Translations under genes and position numbers: made by a program
Assembly: GCA_047495785.1 (NCBI GenBank)
Contig: JBLDXI010000017.1
Location: 2,976,001 to 3,040,000, forward strand
DNA from: Lepidodermella squamata
Lineage: Eukaryota; Animalia; Gastrotricha
Reading direction: 5' to 3'
DNA: 64,000 nt
Part shown: positions 6,580 through 42,692 of the stretch, piece by piece
Layout of the letters: each line of letters starts with the position of its first letter
Position numbering within the stretch: the first letter of the stretch is position 1
The notes under the pieces: generated by a model
The model's input: only the letters and a program-made list of their open reading frames with translations
Told to the model about the DNA's origin: nothing
Database searches by the model: none

Positions 6580-7254
6580 TCATTTCTTGAAGCAAAGCGT
6601 GACGCCGTCGGCAATGGTCAGAAACGAGACGTGAACACGAGTGTCCTTCGCAATTTTGTCATTGAGAGCTCGGATAGCAGATGTCTCAGCATCGGTGATG
6701 TTAGGATTGACAACAAAACCGCTCCACAGCGTGTTATCAACTGCAATGAGACCGCCTTTACGAACGAGCTGCAACGCCATTTCGTAGTAGATTTCGTAGT
6801 TTGGCTTATCGGCGTCGATGAAAGCGAAATCAAACGAATTTTCGCCCTCTTTTCGCAGCAAGTCATGCAGCGTTTTGACCGCATCGCCAATTCGGAAATC
6901 GATTTTATGAGCCACGCCAGCTTCTTTCCACAGCTCGAAAGTGTCAGTTGCCTTGAGAAATTCATCGGTAACGTCCAGGGCGACAACCTTGCCATCGTCA
7001 GGTAGCGCCAATGCGACAGATAAGGAGCTGAAACCAGTGAAAACTCCGATATCGAGCGTTTTTTTCGCGTTCATGAGGCGCAAAAGGTTCTGGAATAGCT
7101 GCATTTCTTCTGGCGCGCCCAACATCATGCTTCGATGGTGCAGCAGAGTTCGCTCGATCAGCTTCATCTGGACAGGATGGAGTCGAACCGATCGCTCGTA
7201 GGCATAACGCACAAGTTCATCCTTTGATTTGTGGCCCTTCATATCATTATCCAT
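6580..7254 (-). CDS. Cation-dependent O-methyltransferase, COMTD1/CCoAOMT-like, copy 1
   Basis: LDIGVFTGFS SAM motif I, FDFAFIDADK, AVDNTLWSG, DGVTLC; intronless. Confidence 0.95.
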   Translation of the reverse strand: MDNDMKGHKSKDELVRYAYERSVRLHPVQMKLIERTLLHHRSMMLGAPEEMQLFQNLLRLMNAKKTLDIGVFTGFSSLSVALALPDDGKVVALDVTDEFLKATDTFELWKEAGVAHKIDFRIGDAVKTLHDLLRKEGENSFDFAFIDADKPNYEIYYEMALQLVRKGGLIAVDNTLWSGFVVNPNITDAETSAIRALNDKIAKDTRVHVSFLTIADGVTLCFKK

Positions 7255-7822
7255 GGTTGAATGTTTTAAATCGCTCTAATACAAACACAAGTCAAAAATC
7301 GAATAATAAAATTTTAAATCGTGTGTTGAATGATTTTGCAATTTGCAATGAAGAAACCACGTGCCGGGAGATCGCGTGTCTTTTTCATTGCGATGAATCA
7401 CACAGTTGAGATTTGAAAATATGTATCGTGTTTTGCCGATATCTGGAGAAGCCGTCAGAAACTAGGTGACGTTAATAAAATAATTTATTAAATTAGGTAA
7501 CTCGTGTGGTCTGAACTAAGCGTCCGAGAATTAGAAAATGGCCTGGCGCAATGTAGGTCAATTTTTTTTCCTATAGCGTGTCCTTTCGTCTAGCAACCTT
7601 TCGCCGTAATCACACACAAATAAACAGGGTTAATTTTTTTGACCTGGGTGGACACTTTCTATGCACGTCGTTTGTGTCAACACTCGGGCATACAATATAG
7701 GCCGTATGCATACTCATTGCGATAAGGACAATTTTATTCTTTATATTATATTAAAAATGTTTACCGCACATATGGTTAAAATTGATAACAATTATGAATA
7801 AATATCCGATAAATATTTTTTA

Positions 7823-8500
7823 CTAGAGCTTGAAGCACAGGCTCACGCCGTCGGCTATGGTTAGGAATGACACCGAAACGCGGTCGTCCTTCGCGATTTT
7901 GTCGTTCAGAGCCCTGATTGCACAAGTACTCGGGGTATTATCAGCCGGGTTGACAACAGCCCCCGCCCAAAGCGTGTTGTCAACCGCTATAATGCCCCCT
8001 TTGCGGACAAGTTTCAGTGCCAGCTCGTAATATTTATCGTAGTTGCTTTTATCCGCGTCAATAAATGCGAAATCGAAGGAATTTTCGCCATCGGCTGCCA
8101 GAATTTTCTCCAACGATTCAACAGCGTTTCCTAGCCGAAATTCGATCTTGTGAGCAACTCCAGCCTCCTCCCAAAATTCGAAACTTCCAGCGCTCAGCAA
8201 ATACTTGTCGGTGACATCCAAGGCGATGACTTTCCCATCATCGGGTAAGGCCAGGGCGACTGACAGTGCGCTGTAACCAGTGTAGACACCAATATCTAGG
8301 GTGCGCTTTGCGTTGAGCAATCGCATCAAATTCTGAAATAGCTGCATTTCTTCCGGGGCACCTAGCATCACGCTATCTTCAATGTGCTCGGTCTTCTCAA
8401 TCAGCTTCGCCTGAACCGGGTGAAGTTTAACAGAGCGCTCGTAGGCATAGCGTATGATCTTATCATCCGATTTGTGACCTTTAAATTGATCCTGAGCCAT
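7823..8500 (-). CDS. COMTD1-like O-methyltransferase, copy 2
   Basis: LDIGVYTGYS, DFAFIDADK, VDNTLW; intronless. Confidence 0.95.
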   Translation of the reverse strand: MAQDQFKGHKSDDKIIRYAYERSVKLHPVQAKLIEKTEHIEDSVMLGAPEEMQLFQNLMRLLNAKRTLDIGVYTGYSALSVALALPDDGKVIALDVTDKYLLSAGSFEFWEEAGVAHKIEFRLGNAVESLEKILAADGENSFDFAFIDADKSNYDKYYELALKLVRKGGIIAVDNTLWAGAVVNPADNTPSTCAIRALNDKIAKDDRVSVSFLTIADGVSLCFKL

Positions 8501-9375
8501 TAGCTTTTTGTAAAAACTAAAGATTAGATAGACTGTTATATAAGCGACCTAATAAAAATATATAGGGTTTGGAGTTTCCTTCTCGAACCGAATATGAATC
8601 ACTATGTATAAGTTGGCATCATAAAAATAATCGGGGGAGAACTATTGAAGCTGTTATTAGAAAAATTTGCATAATTTTAAATTGACAGATTCACGCTGGC
8701 CGCGTTTTGAAAAGCATTGCGTGTATGCCACAAAAATTTGACGTGTAGTTTACAACTGCGGCCGTGGCTGAGTTTAGGGCGAATAGCATGATAACCAGTA
8801 TACAGGGTAATATAAACTAAAGCAGCTAACAAATATATATGTATGTATAAAAAGCGGGTTTTTTTCTAGTCATGCCGTTATACATGAATGCCCTGACTAT
8901 GTGAGCACTACCTACCCGTTATTGTCTAGTATCCTAAACTTGTTTTTAGTGTAAGATTCAGTCACACCATAGACATAATTTAGGATAACACCAGTTAAAA
9001 TGTCTTTGAAAATTTCGAAAAAATAATCAGCGTGTTCCTCGTGATTTCCTCTGTCTGGATCCAACAACAAAACCCTTGGGAAAATCGAAACCGTCAAGGA
9101 ACCAGCTAAAAAACAATCTAATTTTTTGTTTACTTTGCCACCAATAAGCGCTGATGAATCAGCTGACCATCAGCTGATCTGGCGCCCATGGCGTAGCTTT
9201 TTCTCGTGAGTTAGCAGTCTATCCTAAATTATGTCAATGAGTCACACAGAGCTTCTACTAGAAAACCAATTTTCATTGAGGCCAATTTATTTCCTTTTAT
9301 TTATTTGACATCTAAAATGTATCATCATTTGCAAACAAAAATAAAAGAAAAGAGTTCACGAGAGGTTTATTCCAA

Positions 9376-10128
9376 CTACTTCTTGAAACAAAGAGTAACG
9401 CCGTCTGCAATAGTTAGGAAAGAAGGAGAAACCCTAGTGTCTTTCGCAATTTTTTCATTCACAGCTCGAATGGCCTTGGTGTCTTCAGACTGATCGCTTG
9501 CATCGGCCACGCAGCCGCGCCACAACGTATTATCCACAGCAATTATTCCACCCTTTCGAACAAGCTGGAACGCGAGGTCGTAGTATCTACAGTAATTTGT
9601 TTTGTCCGCGTCAATGAACGCAAAATCGAATGACCCAGCTTCGCTCTTTTCCGACAATATTCTTTCTAGCGACTCAACAGCGTTTCCTTTCCTAAAATTG
9701 ATTTTGTGCGCAACACCAGCTTCCTTCCAAAGGTTGAAAGAGTCCGTTGCCGTCAGAAATTCATCGGTTACATCCAGGGCAATAACTTTACCATCGTCAG
9801 GTAACGCCAACGCCACTGATAGAGAGCTGAAGCCAGTGAAAACTCCGATATCGAGCGTTTTCTTCGCTTTCATGAGGCGTAAAATGTTCTGGAACAGCTG
9901 CATTTCCTCAGGAGCCCCCATCATGTTGTTTGATTTTCCCTTCATAGTCCGCTCGATGAGCTTCAATTGAACTGGATGCAAGCGAACGGAATGATCATAG
10001 GCATACTTGACGATTGTGTTGTTAGTCGAGTGTCCCTTTCCTACATCGAGATTTCTAGTCACACTGCTAAAATGACGGTAGAGCGACGGCAAACCGCTAA
10101 AAACAAGCCGCTTTGTTGGCAAATGCAT
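9376..10128 (-). CDS. COMTD1-like O-methyltransferase, copy 3, with N-terminal presequence-like extension
   Basis: Same motifs as the other copies, plus an extra N-terminus MHLPTKRLVFSGLPSLYRHFSSVTRNL. Confidence 0.93.
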   Translation of the reverse strand: MHLPTKRLVFSGLPSLYRHFSSVTRNLDVGKGHSTNNTIVKYAYDHSVRLHPVQLKLIERTMKGKSNNMMGAPEEMQLFQNILRLMKAKKTLDIGVFTGFSSLSVALALPDDGKVIALDVTDEFLTATDSFNLWKEAGVAHKINFRKGNAVESLERILSEKSEAGSFDFAFIDADKTNYCRYYDLAFQLVRKGGIIAVDNTLWRGCVADASDQSEDTKAIRAVNEKIAKDTRVSPSFLTIADGVTLCFKK

Positions 10129-10241
10129 TCGTAAATTCTAGAACACAGTAATTGCAATAATCAATTTATTTTTACCAGGGAAAATTGAACAATTTATGCG
10201 CCCATCAAATCATTTGTTGAAATGAAATTAGGACCATTTTT

Positions 10242-10928
10242 TCATTTCTTGAAGCACAGTGTAACCCCGTCAGCAACGGTAAGAAATGAAACTGACACGC
10301 GATCGTCTTTCGCGATTTTTTCATTGATAGCTCTGATCGCAACAGTTTCAGGCGATTGGTCATTCGGGTCGATGACTAGACCGCTCCAAATCGTGTTGTC
10401 GACTGCAATTATTCCACCTGGACGAACCAGCTTGAAGGCAAGGTCGTAGTAGTTGCTGTAGTTGCCTTTGTCCGCATCGATGAATGCGAAATCGAACGAA
10501 TTTTCGCCCTCGGTTTCCAGCAGTTTTCCCAGCGTTTCTACAGCACTGCCCTTGCGAAAATCGATCTTATGCGAGACACCTGCTTCTTTCCAGAGGTCGA
10601 AAGTTCCAGCCGCAAGCAAGTACTCATCGCTGATATCCATTGCAACGACTTTTCCATCATCGGGGAGGGCGAGAGCCACAGACAGGGCACTGTAACCAGT
10701 GTAGACACCGATATCAAGGGTTCGTTTAGCCTTCATCAGCTTGAGGATGTTCGCGAACAGCTGCATCTCCTCAGGAGCGCCTAGCATTTGACTTCCCTTG
10801 CATTTCAACGTTCGCTCAATCAATTTTTCTTGAATAGGATGCAGACGAACAGAGTGCTGATAGGCGTAGTTTACCAGAGCATTTTTGGTCCGGTATCCTT
10901 TGCCTTCGTCTTTGAAACTCGAATCCAT
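10242..10928 (-). CDS. COMTD1-like O-methyltransferase, copy 4
   Basis: Same motifs; first true ATG (MDSSFK) at 10928. Confidence 0.93.
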   Translation of the reverse strand: MDSSFKDEGKGYRTKNALVNYAYQHSVRLHPIQEKLIERTLKCKGSQMLGAPEEMQLFANILKLMKAKRTLDIGVYTGYSALSVALALPDDGKVVAMDISDEYLLAAGTFDLWKEAGVSHKIDFRKGSAVETLGKLLETEGENSFDFAFIDADKGNYSNYYDLAFKLVRPGGIIAVDNTIWSGLVIDPNDQSPETVAIRAINEKIAKDDRVSVSFLTVADGVTLCFKK

Positions 10929-11193
10929 TTTGCTGTGGTTAGGTCTTAAAAGAGTAAGCAACTATGGGCGGTAGTAGCTATAGTTCTACCGGGAAGAAGT
11001 GACCGCAAAAGAAATGAGATAAGAGGATATCTACAACAAGTAGGTCAGATAAGCATATCACATTACTGATAAATATTACAATCATAACCTAATAAGAAAA
11101 AATGATAGACAAAGGGGAAGATGAATGAAGAAATTTCTTAATTAATTGAAGATGAAGTTCTTTATATTGCCATTCATTAATAATTTTCTTTCA

Positions 11194-39208: not shown

Positions 39209-39653
39209 TTAATAAAATGAATCAGGGCACTGGCGCCCAACACAGTTACAGGCATCCGTTTGGCAGCAGAATGAGCGAGCCCGCATGGCGTCGTTTGGAC
39301 GTGGCTGCCTATTGTTGCCATCGACCGACCCACCAGGGCAATCGTTGACTTGGGCACAATTTTGCATTACCCGTCCGTCTTGAATCGATAGCTAAAGATG
39401 AAGATTCAGCATTTAGAAATTTTGATGAAATCATAGCTATAATACACTTACCTTACAAAACGGAAAAGATGGGCAATCTTTGAGGCGCTGAAACTCACAG
39501 CCTTGCATGACGCTGTTGCAGCGATAACACATGATCGCATCTTAAAAAATTAAACCGTTCGAGCCGAGGATATTAAAATGAATTAAGCAAACCCAATGGA
39601 TGCGGGATCAAAGCCATCAGGACCAAACAGCAACAAAATAAATTCCAGTACAT
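39209..39653 (-). CDS. Secreted Ly6/uPAR (three-finger fold) protein, 3 exons; not in the ORF track
   Basis: Exons ~39653-39593, 39540-39452 and 39391-39209 splice to MYWNLFCCCLVLMALIPHPLDA-IMCYRCNSVMQGCEFQRLKDCPSFPFCK-LSIQDGRVMQNCAQVNDCPGGSVDGNNRQPRPNDAMRARSFCCQTDACNCVGRQCPDSFY*. Carries CYxC and CCxxDxCN, and a phase-1 intron after the signal exon. Confidence 0.88.
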
Positions 39654-39985
39654 TTTCTTGGAATGAACAAATAGCAGAAAATGATAAATCTGACTACTCA
39701 GATGAAAGTAAGCAGAAAACACCATGTGGCTGCAACATATTTATCAAAGGCGCGAACCATGTGACAATAGGCAATTTTTACGAAAACATGTCATTTTATT
39801 AAGAAACGTCAAGTACAGAAAAGCAACACAATATGAAGTTTTGTCTTTGGATACAGCTCGGCCTAAATAAGCCATGCAAGATTGATAACCATTCCAACGG
39901 GCAGCAATCGGTGGATGAGAAAATCTGAAAGAATACCAAAATGTATTGCGATTGGCAATAAATAATGAATGAAAAAGAATAGAAT

Positions 39986-40054
39986 TGATTTCAGAAACGG
40001 CGGAAGATGAAATCATTTCTATCATATACTCGGTAAGGGTTATCATCATAGATA
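39986..40054 (-). ncRNA. C/D snoRNA, SNORD87-like (28S AAACGGCGGGA)
   Basis: C ATGATGA (40049-43), D' ATGA, C' ATGATT, D guide TTCCGCCGTTT-CTGA (39994-91). Confidence 0.83.
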
Positions 40055-40213
40055 ACAGTTCAGGTCGCCGTTTAAACCATCCTCAAAATTACCTTAAACG
40101 ACGAATCATGTCCAAGTGATTTCGAAGATTCGCAGCGAACAACCCTTTAAAAAGGAAAATAAAATGAATTATGAACTGAAAATAAAATAATGCAATTTTT
40201 TGAGATAGTGAGC

Positions 40214-40284
40214 TTAAATCAGAATAGCCATTCTTATCAATTTCTAAAATCATTTGTCCCTAGCTATGTAAATCATCATATGAA
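40214..40284 (-). ncRNA. Double-guide C/D snoRNA (28S UGUCCCUA, SNORD53-like; 18S UGGCCGUUCUU, SNORD32-like)
   Basis: C ATGATGA (40279-73), D' guide TAGCTAGGGACA, D guide AAGAATGGCTA (two G-U pairs), D CTGA (40222-19). Confidence 0.78.
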
Positions 40285-40443
40285 CAGAGAGTAAATAAAA
40301 TACGCAAAACAAACGAACCTGGTGCGTTATTGAGATTGACTGCTAGGTGAATGATCGAAATCGAGACAGCCATAGAACTGAAAAAGAGAAGACGTATTAA
40401 CAGGGCTCAGAGGATTTCTAGCAGGTTTGAGTAGTGATTTGGA

Positions 40444-40509
40444 ATAAATCAGTTTAGCCAGTATAATCAAAAATTTTCATATGTCCCTGGCAGAGTTTCA
40501 TCATAATAA
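40444..40509 (-). ncRNA. C/D snoRNA, diverged paralog of 40214-40284
   Basis: C ATGATGA (40504-498), AGGGACA-t-ATGA, TTGAT, TGGCTA-aa-CTGA (40452-49). Confidence 0.75.
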
Positions 40510-40655
40510 GTTTACAAGGGGGATGCAATCGAAAGCTCACCTCTTCAAGAAGGCATTAACGAAGCCAGCATATCGTCGTTCAGCCAGTTCTGTAACATAA
40601 GGGAAAGTGTCAAAAAAGCCAAAACTAGCAATATGAGAGATTATCATTCTCTACT

Positions 40656-40733
40656 TAATGTCAGATAAATGCCTCGTACTTGAAATCACAACAATCATAT
40701 TTTGTAGCCAAACGTGTTTCTCATCATCCTTAA
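40656..40733 (-). ncRNA. C/D snoRNA, SNORD15 D-guide / snR13-like, copy b
   Basis: C ATGATGA (40727-21), D CTGA (40664-61); guide ACGAGGCATTT; paralog of 41381-41456. Confidence 0.87.
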
Positions 40734-40845
40734 TATATCAGCAAATAAGTAACAAACCAACCTTGAGCTGACGTAGGAAGGCTGGGCAGTCGCGATTATC
40801 GTTTCGAAATTGGAGTTGATCTGCAAGTGAAAATAACACTTGTAA

Positions 40846-40985
40846 TAATGTGACCTCCGAAGTCCCACCAAATCAGAAAATTGAACATTTCAACTTCGGT
40901 CCCTTTCAGATGCCGAATTTCTTTTGCATTTGAATGAGACACACGCGCCCGTTTCGGGCATCGCATGACACTTTGAATGCATTGT
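40846..40985 (-). ncRNA. Structured intronic RNA, H/ACA-like candidate
   Basis: Hairpin TGCATT...GCCC-GAAAC-GGGC...AATGCA, then AAAGAA (ANANNA), then hairpin GACCGAAGT...ACTTCGGAGGTC followed directly by ACA-TTA. Confidence 0.55.
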
Positions 40986-41162
40986 GGAAAATTATTCATG
41001 AAGAAAGACTAACCATTCAAACCAGCCACAGAATAAATCGCCAGCTCAAAGTTTTATTGCGGAAGGGTTGTTGACAATCGAGCGCCAGCGCCAATCCAGC
41101 ACCTGAAAAACCAATGAACTATTAACAAGAGATAAAAAAATACCACTCCAAGTGAAATAGAC

Positions 41163-41228
41163 TGTGTCAGTTTTAAAGGGTTAAAATCACAGTTTTCATT
41201 AGAGGTGTCAAGGTGATCATCATAAAAA
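41163..41228 (-). ncRNA. C/D snoRNA against 28S AGAGGUGUCA (snR48/SNORD60 region)
   Basis: C ATGATGA (41223-17), D' guide TGACACCTCT-a-ATGA, C' GTGATT, D CTGA (41170-67). Confidence 0.8.
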
Positions 41229-41380
41229 CTTCAAACTTTGAAAGCATCAGTTTTTTACTCACCAGGATTGAACACATGGATAATTCGTTGCTGACCGATC
41301 GATGGACGGGGATCTGCAGAGAAAAGAAAATGTTTAACCGATTGATTGATACAGTGTGACTGATTAAATTGCAACTTCGA

Positions 41381-41456
41381 ATTATTCAGGCGAATGCCTC
41401 GTACTTGAAATCATTCTTCTCATATTTGTAGCCAACGGTGTTGTCATCATCAATTA
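41381..41456 (-). ncRNA. C/D snoRNA, SNORD15 D-guide / snR13-like, copy a
   Basis: C ATGATGA (41450-44), D CTGA (41389-86). Guide ACGAGGCATT complements 28S AAUGCCUCGU. Confidence 0.85.
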
Positions 41457-41627
41457 TGATATCAAGGATAATAAGTGGGGAAACATACCGATTTATCGAA
41501 ACCCCATGCGATGAACGTTCAATTGCCATTGCGCAAGGCGTTGCATAGATAGTAGCGTGATCTGTGATTTAATAAAATCAAGAATTAGCGAATCATATAA
41601 GCAGAAAAATGGTTCTACCTATACAGT

Positions 41628-41697
41628 GATTTTCAGAAAATTTGATAGTTGGTATCATTAAATTCAAAGAATTCGCCATTATGATCATCATAATATC
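41628..41697 (-). ncRNA. C/D snoRNA, target not identified
   Basis: C ATGATGA (41691-85), D' TTGA, C' ATGATA, D CTGA (41636-33), terminal stem TGAT/ATCA; 71 nt from the 3' splice site. Confidence 0.75.
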
Positions 41698-41858
41698 ATA
41701 GTAACTCAAACATTACGGAAACTCACCTCGAATGGGTAGCTGCAGCAGGAGCTGCCGAATGTCGCTTCAGGTGAATCATAACTCACGACCTGAAGAACAA
41801 AAAATGAATAGTAATGCAAGCCATAACAATCAAGAAGATTAGCTATGATGAATGTTGA

Positions 41859-41925
41859 ACGTTCAGTAAAAAGTAAATAGAATCATAGAACTCTCATACT
41901 CGTCATCTAATATGCATCATTAGAA
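41859..41925 (-). ncRNA. C/D snoRNA, snR75 / U15 D'-guide-like
   Basis: C ATGATGC (41920-14), D' ATGA, D CTGA (41866-63). Guide ATTAGATGACGAG complements conserved 28S CUCGUCAUCUAAU. Confidence 0.85.
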
Positions 41926-42692
41926 CCTTATAAGCGAAATATGCGGAGAAATAGCGCTTACCTTGAATTAATACTGGATTTATCAACCGTCAAATCAAGG
42001 TCATCCTTGTAGATGAAACCAGAAGGAGAATTGCCTAATCAAGAGAGCTTGACAAGAACTGGTACTCATCTGGGGCTAACGCGGCGGTATTTGAAGGGAT
42101 TAAGTCCACGCCGTCGGGTTAGAGCATTATGCCGGCGTGGTTAGCAACACGTGTTTAACGGTGAAGATCATAGCAATATTATTAAAATTAATTGAATTCA
42201 TATATTATATAAATTTATTAAATACAACGATCAAATTTTACTAATTAGAAATGAATTTATTGCTGCATGTTTTGATGTGATTCCGCGCCAAAATCTGAGC
42301 CACAGCTTTGCTTGAAGCTTCACTGATGACTCGTTGGAGAAGTTTGGAAGCCTGGGAGTAAAGAAATGAGAGACATCGAGGCAGCTTGAATAAGCGGCAT
42401 TATCGATGATTTTAAGTGTTCGATCTGTATTTTCTACGGAAATGATAAGGCTTGGTGTAAGCATGAACTCTTCATTATCACAATGACTTATCCTTATCAG
42501 CAGAAACCTCATCATGAGGACTCGCTGAGGCGCGCCATATCGGTCATTGCGGCTGCAATTTTCACCTGACCGCATTATCCAATGCATGTGTCCCAATACA
42601 TTTCCTATTTAGAGCAGGTCCAGCAGTAGGTGATAAGCATTTCCCGGGGATCAAACCCCATCATTTTCGCTCTTGCAAAACAAAAACAAGCC

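Follow-up and report, generated by a model that had tools for sequence, protein, structure and literature searches.

Spliced non-coding host genes that carry one box C/D snoRNA per intron are well known from mammals, where GAS5 and UHG/SNHG1 contain short open reading frames and GAS5 holds 10 snoRNAs (PMC6856654). Drosophila has seven Uhg genes, with 16 snoRNAs in Uhg1 (PMC11014333, PMC4430873), and a UHG-like architecture is documented in Neurospora (PMC2780460). The non-coding hosts of Drosophila and vertebrates are Myc/E-box targets and the Uhg and SNHG promoters carry an E-box (PMC4430873), and for C/D snoRNAs processed from introns the position relative to the splice site matters (PMC2780460). 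We describe here a minus-strand locus in a 64-kb stretch of DNA (the window) that we regard, with a probability of about 0.85, as a gene of the UHG/GAS5/Drosophila-Uhg class that hosts snoRNAs in its introns. This reading is supported by the box architecture of the small RNAs, the regular distances between them and the splice sites, the guide complementarity to rRNA at the D+5 position, and a ninth unit of the H/ACA class with a bipartite 18S guide.

On the minus strand, the DNA between 39.8 and 42.1 kb divides into ten predicted exons, all of them short, and nine introns of the GT-AG type (Table 1); the spliced exons would total ~790 nt. A preliminary description of this DNA had given internal exons of ~50–90 nt and introns of 160–195 nt, about three times the local norm; we find internal exons of 49–89 nt and introns of 160–193 nt, and the threefold excess follows from comparison with two introns (~61 and ~56 nt) of an EHD gene next to the locus. 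This neighbor is identified as an EHD gene by a protein database match. In a genome of ~60-nt introns, lengthening to a uniform ~170 nt would make room for a snoRNA while keeping constant its spacing to the 3' splice site. The poly(A) signal reported earlier is present in exon 10. Intron 8 has an alternative acceptor, TTTTCAG at 40176, but the spacing to the D box would no longer be uniform if it were used. At the 5' end of the gene there is a canonical E-box, a sequence present in seven copies in the 64-kb window, which gives a chance of ~0.02 of finding one within ±100 nt.

Table 1. Positions within the window of the host gene, its exons and introns, the small RNAs and the 5' elements
Feature	Position	Strand	Length (nt)	Remarks
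Host gene	39780..42180	minus		gene model; 5' end between ~42100 and 42180, 3' end ~20 nt past AATAAA
TATA-like TATATAA	42205..42211	minus		upstream of exon 1; consensus match only
E-box CACGTG	42148..42153			canonical; at host-gene 5' end
Exon 1	41962..42100	minus		gene model, minimum extent; first AUG opens a 22-codon ORF with its stop inside exon 1
Intron 1	41790..41961	minus	172	GTAAGC...TTCAG
snoRNA 1	41863..41920	minus	58 (C to D)	box C/D; in intron 1
Exon 2	41727..41789	minus	63
Intron 2	41562..41726	minus	165
snoRNA 2	41633..41691	minus	59	box C/D; D' is UUGA
Exon 3	41489..41561	minus	73
Intron 3	41314..41488	minus	175
snoRNA 3	41386..41450	minus	65	box C/D; paralogue of snoRNA 6
Exon 4	41263..41313	minus	51
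Intron 4	41103..41262	minus	160
snoRNA 4	41167..41223	minus	57	box C/D; Rfam 25.9 bits, below gathering
Exon 5	41014..41102	minus	89
Intron 5	40821..41013	minus	193	without C/D boxes
H/ACA snoRNA candidate	40846..40983	minus	~138	in intron 5
Exon 6	40762..40820	minus	59
Intron 6	40590..40761	minus	172	72% identity with intron 3
snoRNA 6	40661..40727	minus	67	box C/D
Exon 7	40541..40589	minus	49
Intron 7	40378..40540	minus	163
snoRNA 7	40449..40504	minus	56	box C/D
Exon 8	40319..40377	minus	59
Intron 8	40145..40318	minus	174	acceptor AAAG
snoRNA 8	40219..40279	minus	61	box C/D; Rfam 25.5 bits, below gathering
Exon 9	40093..40144	minus	52
Intron 9	39925..40092	minus	168
snoRNA 9	39991..40049	minus	59	box C/D
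Exon 10	39780..39924	minus		carries AATAAA at 39800-39795

Each of introns 1–4 and 6–9 contains one complete unit in the order C, guide, D', C', guide, D, and all of the boxes that had been proposed for eight introns could be located. The C box is AUGAUGA in seven of the eight units and AUGAUGC in intron 1, the D box is CUGA throughout, D' is AUGA in seven units and UUGA in one, and C' is NUGAUN, positioned 5–9 nt downstream of D'. The units are 56–67 nt box to box with guide spacers of 16–22 nt and 11–18 nt, and the terminal stems are short, with 1–5 contiguous bp in the 9-nt flanks. In all eight, 34–43 nt separate the 5' splice site from the C box, and 64–74 nt separate the D box from the 3' splice site. 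The strict motif RTGATGA-N40-62-CTGA is found seven times in the 2.3 kb, compared with ~0.8 per strand expected from shuffling of the whole window. Six other C/D-like motif matches in the window were rejected because their guides have no conserved rRNA match; two of these six are copies of each other.

No part of the window has an Rfam match at gathering thresholds. The Rfam search suggested in the preliminary description returned weaker matches to snR75, SNORD74, Me28S-G3255 and an H/ACA family, none of them at the gathering score. All 13 of the minus-strand sub-gathering matches in the region are to box C/D families, with snR75, Me28S-G3255, Me28S-Cm2645 and SNORD74 the best. We take the low scores to reflect divergence from the described families, a match at gathering not being a feature that defines the class.

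Guide targets were sought in eukaryotic rDNA from metagenomes, which is foreign and not the species' own, with 18S and 28S placed by way of short conserved landmarks. A raw listing of longest matches over all 615 kb of rDNA loci was swamped by spacer noise, and when the strongest duplex within 55 kb of varied rDNA was set against shuffled guides, the D' guide of snoRNA 1 was the only significant one. Because this best-duplex test is too permissive, we adopted one that scores complementarity kept in at least eight of ten complete eukaryotic rDNA units against shuffled guides. With these ten units the z-scores are 6.9 for the snoRNA 1 D' guide, 4.0 for the snoRNA 8 D guide, 3.3 for the snoRNA 4 D' guide, 2.6 for the snoRNA 6 D guide and 2.0 for the snoRNA 9 D guide. 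The D+5 nucleotide falls at a conserved site of the foreign rDNA for snoRNAs 1, 3, 4, 6, 8 (with both guides) and 9, which bears out, for foreign eukaryotic rDNA, the earlier proposal that conserved rRNA is matched by guides in six or more of the C/D units. The conserved methylation sites matched, in yeast numbering (site list in PMC5199042), are Gm2288, Am2281 (twice), Cm2337 and Gm2791/2793 in 25S and Gm1271 in 18S, and, counted from the target of snoRNA 1, D+5 nucleotides at −7 and +49 reproduce the yeast spacing of Am2281, Gm2288 and Cm2337 exactly. A target under the same rule is probable for snoRNA 7, and the targets of snoRNA 2 are tentative. For seven guides (1D, 2D, 2D', 3D', 4D, 7D and 9D') the rDNA comparison gave at most tentative targets, and among the fetched rDNA loci none fits the lineage-specific guides closely enough to come from a relative.

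In snoRNA 1, the D' guide pairs over 13 nt with 28S CUCGUCAUCUAAU, which corresponds to Gm2288 of yeast 25S (snR75); its Rfam score against snR75 is 27.6 bits (E 0.0045), below the gathering value of 40. The paralogous snoRNAs 3 and 6 both place D+5 at the yeast Am2281 site (snR13; human U15 A3764), with D guides pairing over 10 nt with 28S AAUGCCUCGU and 11 nt with 28S AAAUGCCUCGU respectively. The upstream spacer of snoRNA 3 contains GUUGGCUAC, a near-complement of the adjoining 28S GUAGCCAAA, and the snoRNA 6 spacer UUUGGCUAC complements the same adjoining segment, an extra base-pairing of the snR13 type; snR13 itself combines a short guide with an additional, overlapping base-pairing element (PMC3116282). 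For snoRNA 6 the rDNA complementarity is found in 119 and 104 of 120 loci. The D' guide of snoRNA 4 pairs over 11–12 nt with 28S UAGAGGUGUCAG (the Drosophila Me28S-G3255 family; yeast Gm2791/2793, snR48), and its D guide possibly addresses a site in the 28S 5' domain. snoRNA 8 uses both of its guides, D' pairing with 28S UGUCCCUA, the yeast Cm2337/human C3820 site (SNORD74, Me28S-Cm2645), and D with 18S AUGGCCGUUCUUA, the yeast Gm1271 (snR40) site, where the G of CAUGG is targeted.

The D guide of snoRNA 9 forms 12 bp with 28S AAACGGCGGGAG, which precedes the Gm2288 site by 42 nt, and its target is the equivalent of yeast G2246, which is not a methylated site in yeast; 28S GAAUUCGGUAAG is a possible partner of the D' guide. 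In snoRNA 7, the entire 17-nt spacer between C and D' aligns to a semi-variable 28S sequence, NNGYCCCNGGNAGAGUU, which lies ~650 nt to the 5' side of Gm2288, with at least 13 of the 17 positions paired in 35 of 53 loci and 16 at best. We considered whether snoRNA 7 is SNORD74-like (Rfam, 21 bits) and rejected this, because the resemblance rests on a shared GGGACAU, and no more than 7 nt fit the Cm2337 site whereas the full 17-nt spacer fits the other 28S site. Tentatively, the D guide of snoRNA 2 fits a stretch of 18S that precedes the Gm1271 site by ~21 nt (in two of ten rDNA units) and its D' guide fits 28S AGAAUUCGCCA over 11 nt (in eight loci).

A ninth small RNA had also been claimed, and intron 5 does hold a candidate, of the H/ACA type. 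Its 5' hairpin begins at 40981 and is followed by an H box (AAAGAA, ~40924), a 3' hairpin from 40914, and an ACA at 40851–40849, after which UUA leaves 3 nt to the 3' end. The two-hairpin fold has an energy of −41.1 kcal/mol, equal to the minimum, with an unremarkable z-score of −1.7. The 3' pocket (AAAGGG and GGGAC) forms a perfect 6+5 pairing with the universally conserved 18S sequence GUCCC-UG-CCCUUU at 15 nt from the ACA, and this bipartite match occurs in seven of ten rDNA units with a score of 11, compared with a shuffle maximum of 10. The rDNA search found no target for the 5' pocket. Similarity to Rfam SNORA54 is full-length but weak, at 15.3 bits.

A close parallel is with the Drosophila melanogaster Uhg genes (Uhg1–Uhg8), multi-exon lncRNA hosts with one snoRNA per intron, introns lengthened for the snoRNA in a short-intron genome, and an E-box in the promoter, features that the present locus probably shares; guides for the Me28S-G3255 and Me28S-Cm2645 sites are common to both. 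However, the exons have no detectable homology in sequence, the snoRNA set is different, and the present locus has an H/ACA unit among its C/D units and lies tight against a downstream gene. The predicted gene has the organization set out above for the mammalian hosts, and the SNORD74 of GAS5 has a guide for 28S C3820 in common with snoRNA 8, but the aligned Rfam consensus of SNORD74 lacks the 18S Gm1271-type guide that snoRNA 8 carries. Introns and snoRNAs are larger in mammals, and the 5'TOP start and sensitivity to NMD documented there are a guess for the present gene. Clusters I–V of Neurospora crassa also comprise non-coding hosts with short ORFs (159–267 bp) and intronic C/D snoRNAs, whose spacing to the 3' splice site resembles that in Drosophila, although they are fungal, contain C/D snoRNAs only and have documented alternative splicing, and we imply no descent. 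In yeast, snR75, snR13, snR64, snR40 and snR48 have the same targets by context and spacing (Gm2288, Am2281, Cm2337, 18S Gm1271 and Gm2791/2793), and snR13 has the short guide and extra overlapping element seen in snoRNAs 3 and 6. These yeast RNAs are much longer than those described here and mostly have their own transcription units or belong to non-intronic clusters, and the guides are combined differently here, those for Cm2337 and Gm1271 being in one RNA.

Alternatively, the snoRNA introns could belong to a long, multi-exon 5' UTR of the immediately downstream same-strand gene for a Ly6-like secreted protein, or both could be cistrons of one trans-spliced operon; the host would then not stand alone as a non-coding gene. 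The Ly6-like gene has an unpaired acceptor (TTGCAG) 55–60 nt past the AATAAA, and an ATG 4 nt further on opens a signal-peptide-like exon at ~39735–39650. However, an AATAAA at this distance ahead of the acceptor is expected for a separate 3' end, exon 10 lacks a good donor from which a normal-sized intron could start, and a translated mRNA would not usually carry a 5' UTR of ten exons and numerous upstream AUGs; we consider this arrangement unlikely. In a particular version, spliced-leader addition would resolve an operon that has the non-coding host as its upstream cistron and the Ly6-like gene as its downstream cistron. This is suggested only by the interval of ~60 nt from the AATAAA to the unpaired acceptor that shortly precedes the following ATG, and it seems to us similarly doubtful. 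If it were true, a Ly6-like protein gene would ride on a growth-regulated snoRNA promoter, and we know of no description so far of a non-coding snoRNA host within an animal operon.

It could also be that the host is, or recently was, protein-coding, with its snoRNAs intronic as in ribosomal-protein hosts. A 116-codon frame across exons 6–10, with an AUG in exon 8, would give a small protein and stays open over four splice junctions, yet this length is reached by 8% of shuffles (P ~0.08), which is within chance. The codon-usage score of the frame is 0.04, above the out-of-frame values of −0.32 and −0.39 but 2.5 sd under real exons (0.20 ± 0.06), and stop-free frames are biased upward in any event. 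Moreover, the frame meets no stop on its way through the AATAAA, five or more upstream ORFs lie ahead of it, and Pfam has no match to its last-exon part. In the 5' part of the spliced RNA there is no long ATG-initiated ORF, the longest with a stop having 46 codons, in agreement with the original remark that no continuous ORF is present there. A coding host strikes us as improbable, and the spliced exons are probably non-coding. A quite different proposal accepts the units as real snoRNA genes, transcribed independently or as an unspliced polycistron cut by endonuclease, and makes the GT...AG pairs coincidental. Polycistronic, non-intronic snoRNA clusters do occur in plants, trypanosomatids and yeast (PMC2780460), but here nine of nine units are flanked by GT...AG with pyrimidine-rich acceptors, the distance from D box to acceptor stays between 64 and 74 nt in all eight C/D units, the segments between units are richer in GC (0.45 versus 0.33), and no promoter-like element lies between them. 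We give this proposal very little credence.

For the preferred UHG/GAS5-type host, RNA polymerase II would produce a minus-strand pre-RNA of ~2.3 kb, splicing would release the nine introns, and exonucleases would trim each of these to the core protected by its snoRNP. The products would be eight box C/D snoRNAs (~60–75 nt) and one H/ACA snoRNA (~138 nt), the former guiding fibrillarin to 2'-O-methylate the 28S or 18S nucleotide paired at the fifth position upstream of D or D', and the latter directing pseudouridylation of one 18S uridine. The spliced exons, with their many short upstream ORFs, would be a by-product that is probably non-coding and unstable. The splice signals, the order of the boxes, their regular positions and the pairing of guides with targets are shown by the sequence, from which we infer transcription, splicing-coupled processing, actual modification of the rRNA and non-coding status. 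The sequence tests all fit the UHG/GAS5 architecture that had been suggested for this DNA.

The novelty implied at that stage was overstated, the same architecture being documented in mammals, Drosophila and Neurospora. With such a layout already familiar in flies, mammals and fungi, we view the locus as real but ordinary, and it leaves the general understanding of snoRNA biology unchanged. It does predict specific rRNA modification sites, the majority of them universally conserved, while the 28S G2246 equivalent, the 28S C in GYCCCNGGNAGAGUU and the 18S U in GUCCCUGCCC may be lineage-specific. It also provides nine snoRNA annotations that the curated thresholds of Rfam miss, in a genome without a close sequenced relative. 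The intronless O-methyltransferase in the window, for which the contig collection holds no exact entry, has a best identity of 71%, to an ENA protein, and is ~50% identical to proteins of fish, annelids and crustaceans.

Read on the minus strand, the interval at ~42.1–39.8 kb is a predicted host gene of ten exons and nine introns. Its internal exons measure 49–89 nt, in agreement with the ~50–90 nt of the preliminary description, and the poly(A) signal claimed there is present as AATAAA in the last exon. All nine introns are GT...AG, with the acceptor following a pyrimidine-rich or TTTCAG-like tract, and GC content is 0.45 in the host exons versus 0.33 in the introns. The introns had been put at about three times the local norm, and this holds, since they span 160–193 nt and two introns of the EHD gene, which starts ~500 nt away on the opposite strand, are ~61 and 56 nt.

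Predicted features of the host gene and its 5' flank (window coordinates)
Feature	Position	Strand	Length (nt)	Remark
TATA-like element	42211-42205	minus		upstream of host
E-box CACGTG	42153-42148			canonical; host 5' end, between host and divergent EHD gene
Exon join, intron 1	41962-41789	minus	172	
Exon join, intron 2	41727-41561	minus	165	
Exon join, intron 3	41489-41313	minus	175	
Exon join, intron 4	41263-41102	minus	160	
Exon join, intron 5	41014-40820	minus	193	
H/ACA candidate core	40983-40846	minus	138	in intron 5
Exon join, intron 6	40762-40589	minus	172	
Exon join, intron 7	40541-40377	minus	163	
Exon join, intron 8	40319-40144 (or 40175)	minus	174	
Exon join, intron 9	40093-39924	minus	168	
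AATAAA	39800-39795	minus		last exon of host

Eight introns had been said to carry a C...D unit with internal D' and C' boxes, and introns 1–4 and 6–9 do contain one complete box C/D unit apiece (snoRNAs 1–4 and 6–9, numbered by intron). The C box is AUGAUGA (AUGAUGC in intron 1), the D' box is AUGA in seven of the eight units and UUGA in the other, a C' box fitting NUGAUN lies 5–9 nt past D', and the D box is CUGA; the C-to-D' and C'-to-D spacers are 16–22 and 11–18 nt, and the units measure 56–67 nt from C to D. Terminal stems are weak (1–5 bp). In all eight, the 5' splice site is 34–43 nt from the C box and the end of the D box is 64–74 nt from the 3' splice site, a distance on which processing of intronic C/D RNAs is established to depend (cited in PMC2780460), and this uniform D-box spacing favours AAAG (40145) over TTTTCAG (40176) as the intron 8 acceptor. 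The motif RTGATGA-N40-62-CTGA occurs seven times in the 2.3 kb of the host, compared with ~0.8 per strand expected from shuffling of the whole window; no rRNA-matching guide was found for the six other matches elsewhere in the window. Two of these six, near-identical 57-nt stretches on the plus strand (14795 and 20924), were rejected as snoRNAs, having no rRNA-complementary guide, and probably belong to the coding regions of duplicated genes.

Against Rfam, nothing in the whole window matched at gathering thresholds. In E-value mode, below gathering, all 13 minus-strand matches in the host region were to box C/D families. On the plus strand this mode gave three matches, one to snoR16 (25.8 bits), likewise a box C/D family, and two weak ones to families other than snoRNAs. 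Among these sub-threshold matches, snoRNA 1 aligns with snR75 (27.6 bits, E 0.0045), snoRNA 4 with Me28S-G3255 and SNORD100, snoRNA 7 with SNORD74, and snoRNA 8 with Me28S-Cm2645, and snoRNAs 2 and 9 have weak matches to box C/D families. Across the guide cores, the alignments agree fully or almost fully with the family consensus, as with UUAGAUGACGAGU for snR75.

No rRNA was found in the window, and the guides were therefore compared with eukaryotic metagenomic rDNA: 120 loci retrieved with an 18-nt probe tiled from two guides, from which ten near-complete 18S+28S units of other organisms were cut. Guides are named for their RNA and the box downstream (1D' lies upstream of the D' box of snoRNA 1), and the modified nucleotide is taken to pair with the fifth position upstream of that box (D+5). 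Scored for D+5 complementarity in at least eight of the ten foreign units against 100 shuffles per guide, 1D', 8D, 4D' and 6D gave z-scores of 6.9, 4.0, 3.3 and 2.6, and 9D, 3D and 8D' gave 2.0, 1.4 and 1.2. The duplexes place sites in metagenomic rDNA for snoRNAs 1, 3, 4, 6, 8 and 9, matching the earlier count of at least six units with a guide to conserved rRNA. In 28S, the predicted modified nucleotide is the G of CCUCG for snoRNA 1 and the third A of CCAAAUGCC for snoRNAs 3 and 6, and 8D' points to the first C of UGUCCCUA; in every rDNA unit the latter two targets lie at -7 and +49 from the first, the identical spacing of yeast Am2281, Gm2288 and Cm2337 in an experimentally mapped list (PMC5199042). 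8D pairs with 18S AUGGCCGUUCUUA, placing D+5 at the second G of CAUGG; by our own reading of the sequence context for the yeast numbering, its predicted target is the Gm1271 position, adjoining Um1269 (PMC5199042). 4D' pairs with UAGAGGUGUCAG, the Me28S-G3255/snR48 (Gm2791/2793) site, and 9D forms a 12-bp duplex at AAACGGCGGGAG, where its target, unmethylated in yeast, precedes the Gm2288 site by 42 nt. For snoRNA 2 the candidate sites in 18S and 28S are tentative. Over its full 17 nt, the first spacer of snoRNA 7 aligns with a single homologous, semi-variable site in 28S, with at least 13 of 17 positions paired in 35 of 53 loci (16 of 17 at best), which argues that its resemblance to SNORD74 is probably superficial or paralogous. 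From the guides, Lepidodermella 28S is expected to read AUGUCCCUGGCAGAGUU where snoRNA 7 pairs and UGUCCCUAGCUA where 8D' pairs. In one metagenomic locus (L076, LSU ~2225-2325) two conserved motifs of 28S, AAACGGCGGGAG and AAAUGCCUCG, have 65 nt more between them than in the remaining nine units; this surplus begins with gtaag directly after AACUAUG, and the rDNA may therefore carry an insertion or intron here.

Introns 3 and 6 are paralogous: they share 72% identity, with background at ~62%. Besides a guide of 10–11 bp, each of their snoRNAs has an element further upstream, (G/U)UUGGCUAC, whose complement in rRNA lies directly 5' of the guide target and overlaps it. In this they resemble snR13, which like other short-guide snoRNAs is known for such 'extra base-pairing' (PMC3116282). 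snoRNAs 7 (intron at 40378-40540) and 8 (intron at 40145-40318) have in common a core AGGGACA(U/A)AUGA and, ahead of the D box, UGGCUA; apart from these their introns are 63% alike, no more than background. These two may be old paralogues whose guides have diverged to different 28S sites.

No C or D boxes were found in intron 5, and the ninth small RNA claimed for the locus is there an H/ACA-type candidate. Its 138-nt core is predicted to fold into 5' and 3' hairpins joined by a hinge with AAAGAA, ending in an ACA followed by three nucleotides; the fold of -41.1 kcal/mol, equal to the minimum for a slightly longer stretch, is statistically unremarkable on its own (z -1.7). A better indication is the internal loop of the 3' hairpin (AAAGGG and GGGAC), which makes a 6+5 pairing with 18S GUCCC-UG-CCCUUU in seven of ten rDNA units, 15 nt from the ACA, and the pocket scores 11 against a shuffled-pocket maximum of 10. 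SNORA54, an Rfam H/ACA model of identical architecture, aligns weakly over the full length (15.3 bits); no target for the 5' pocket was found in the metagenomic rDNA. The predicted uridine we take to be yeast U1621, counting from Cm1639, and U1621 is not a known yeast pseudouridine.

The host RNA, ~790 nt when spliced as predicted, is probably non-coding. Consistent with the view that it has no continuous 5' ORF, the ORF begun at its first AUG ends after 22 codons, still within exon 1, and ORFs running from AUG to stop reach at most 46 codons. One 116-codon stop-free frame runs from exon 6 through the AATAAA, a length equalled in 8% of shuffles, and its codon-usage score is 0.04 versus 0.20 ± 0.06 in 29 stretches of real exon from the window. 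No Pfam match was found for the last-exon part of this frame.

The UHG/GAS5 architecture proposed for the locus is supported by a predicted layout of one snoRNA per intron, as in mammalian GAS5, with ten C/D snoRNAs (PMC6856654), the seven Uhg lncRNAs of Drosophila (PMC11014333), Uhg1 among them with 16 snoRNAs (PMC4430873), and the UHG-like clusters of Neurospora (PMC2780460). Myc binds E-boxes at Uhg and SNHG promoters (PMC4430873); CACGTG occurs seven times in the 64-kb window. Past the other end of the host, on the minus strand within 39640-39745, an unpaired acceptor TTGCAG is followed by CCAC-ATG and the signal-peptide-like, hydrophobic, cysteine-rich first exon of a Ly6-like gene. This acceptor and ATG come ~60 nt after the AATAAA, a spacing reminiscent of the gap between cistrons in an operon. 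An operon or shared transcript is an arrangement that we consider improbable. For the snoRNA host gene itself, the architecture is already known and what sets this locus apart is modest: the snoRNAs are very small, their D' boxes are almost uniformly AUGA, guides for Cm2337 and 18S Gm1271 occur within one RNA, a few targets are possibly lineage-specific, and the host is packed tightly against the gene that follows. The individual RNAs are predicted functional counterparts of snR75, snR13, snR64/SNORD74, snR40 and snR48.

Elsewhere in the window, 6580-10961 on the minus strand holds intronless O-methyltransferase genes (PF01596). The exact protein of the one searched was not found in the contig collection; its best match, an unnamed ENA protein, is 71% identical and thus no close relative, and many of the matches listed carry bacterial-type names (YrrM, caffeoyl-CoA O-methyltransferase).
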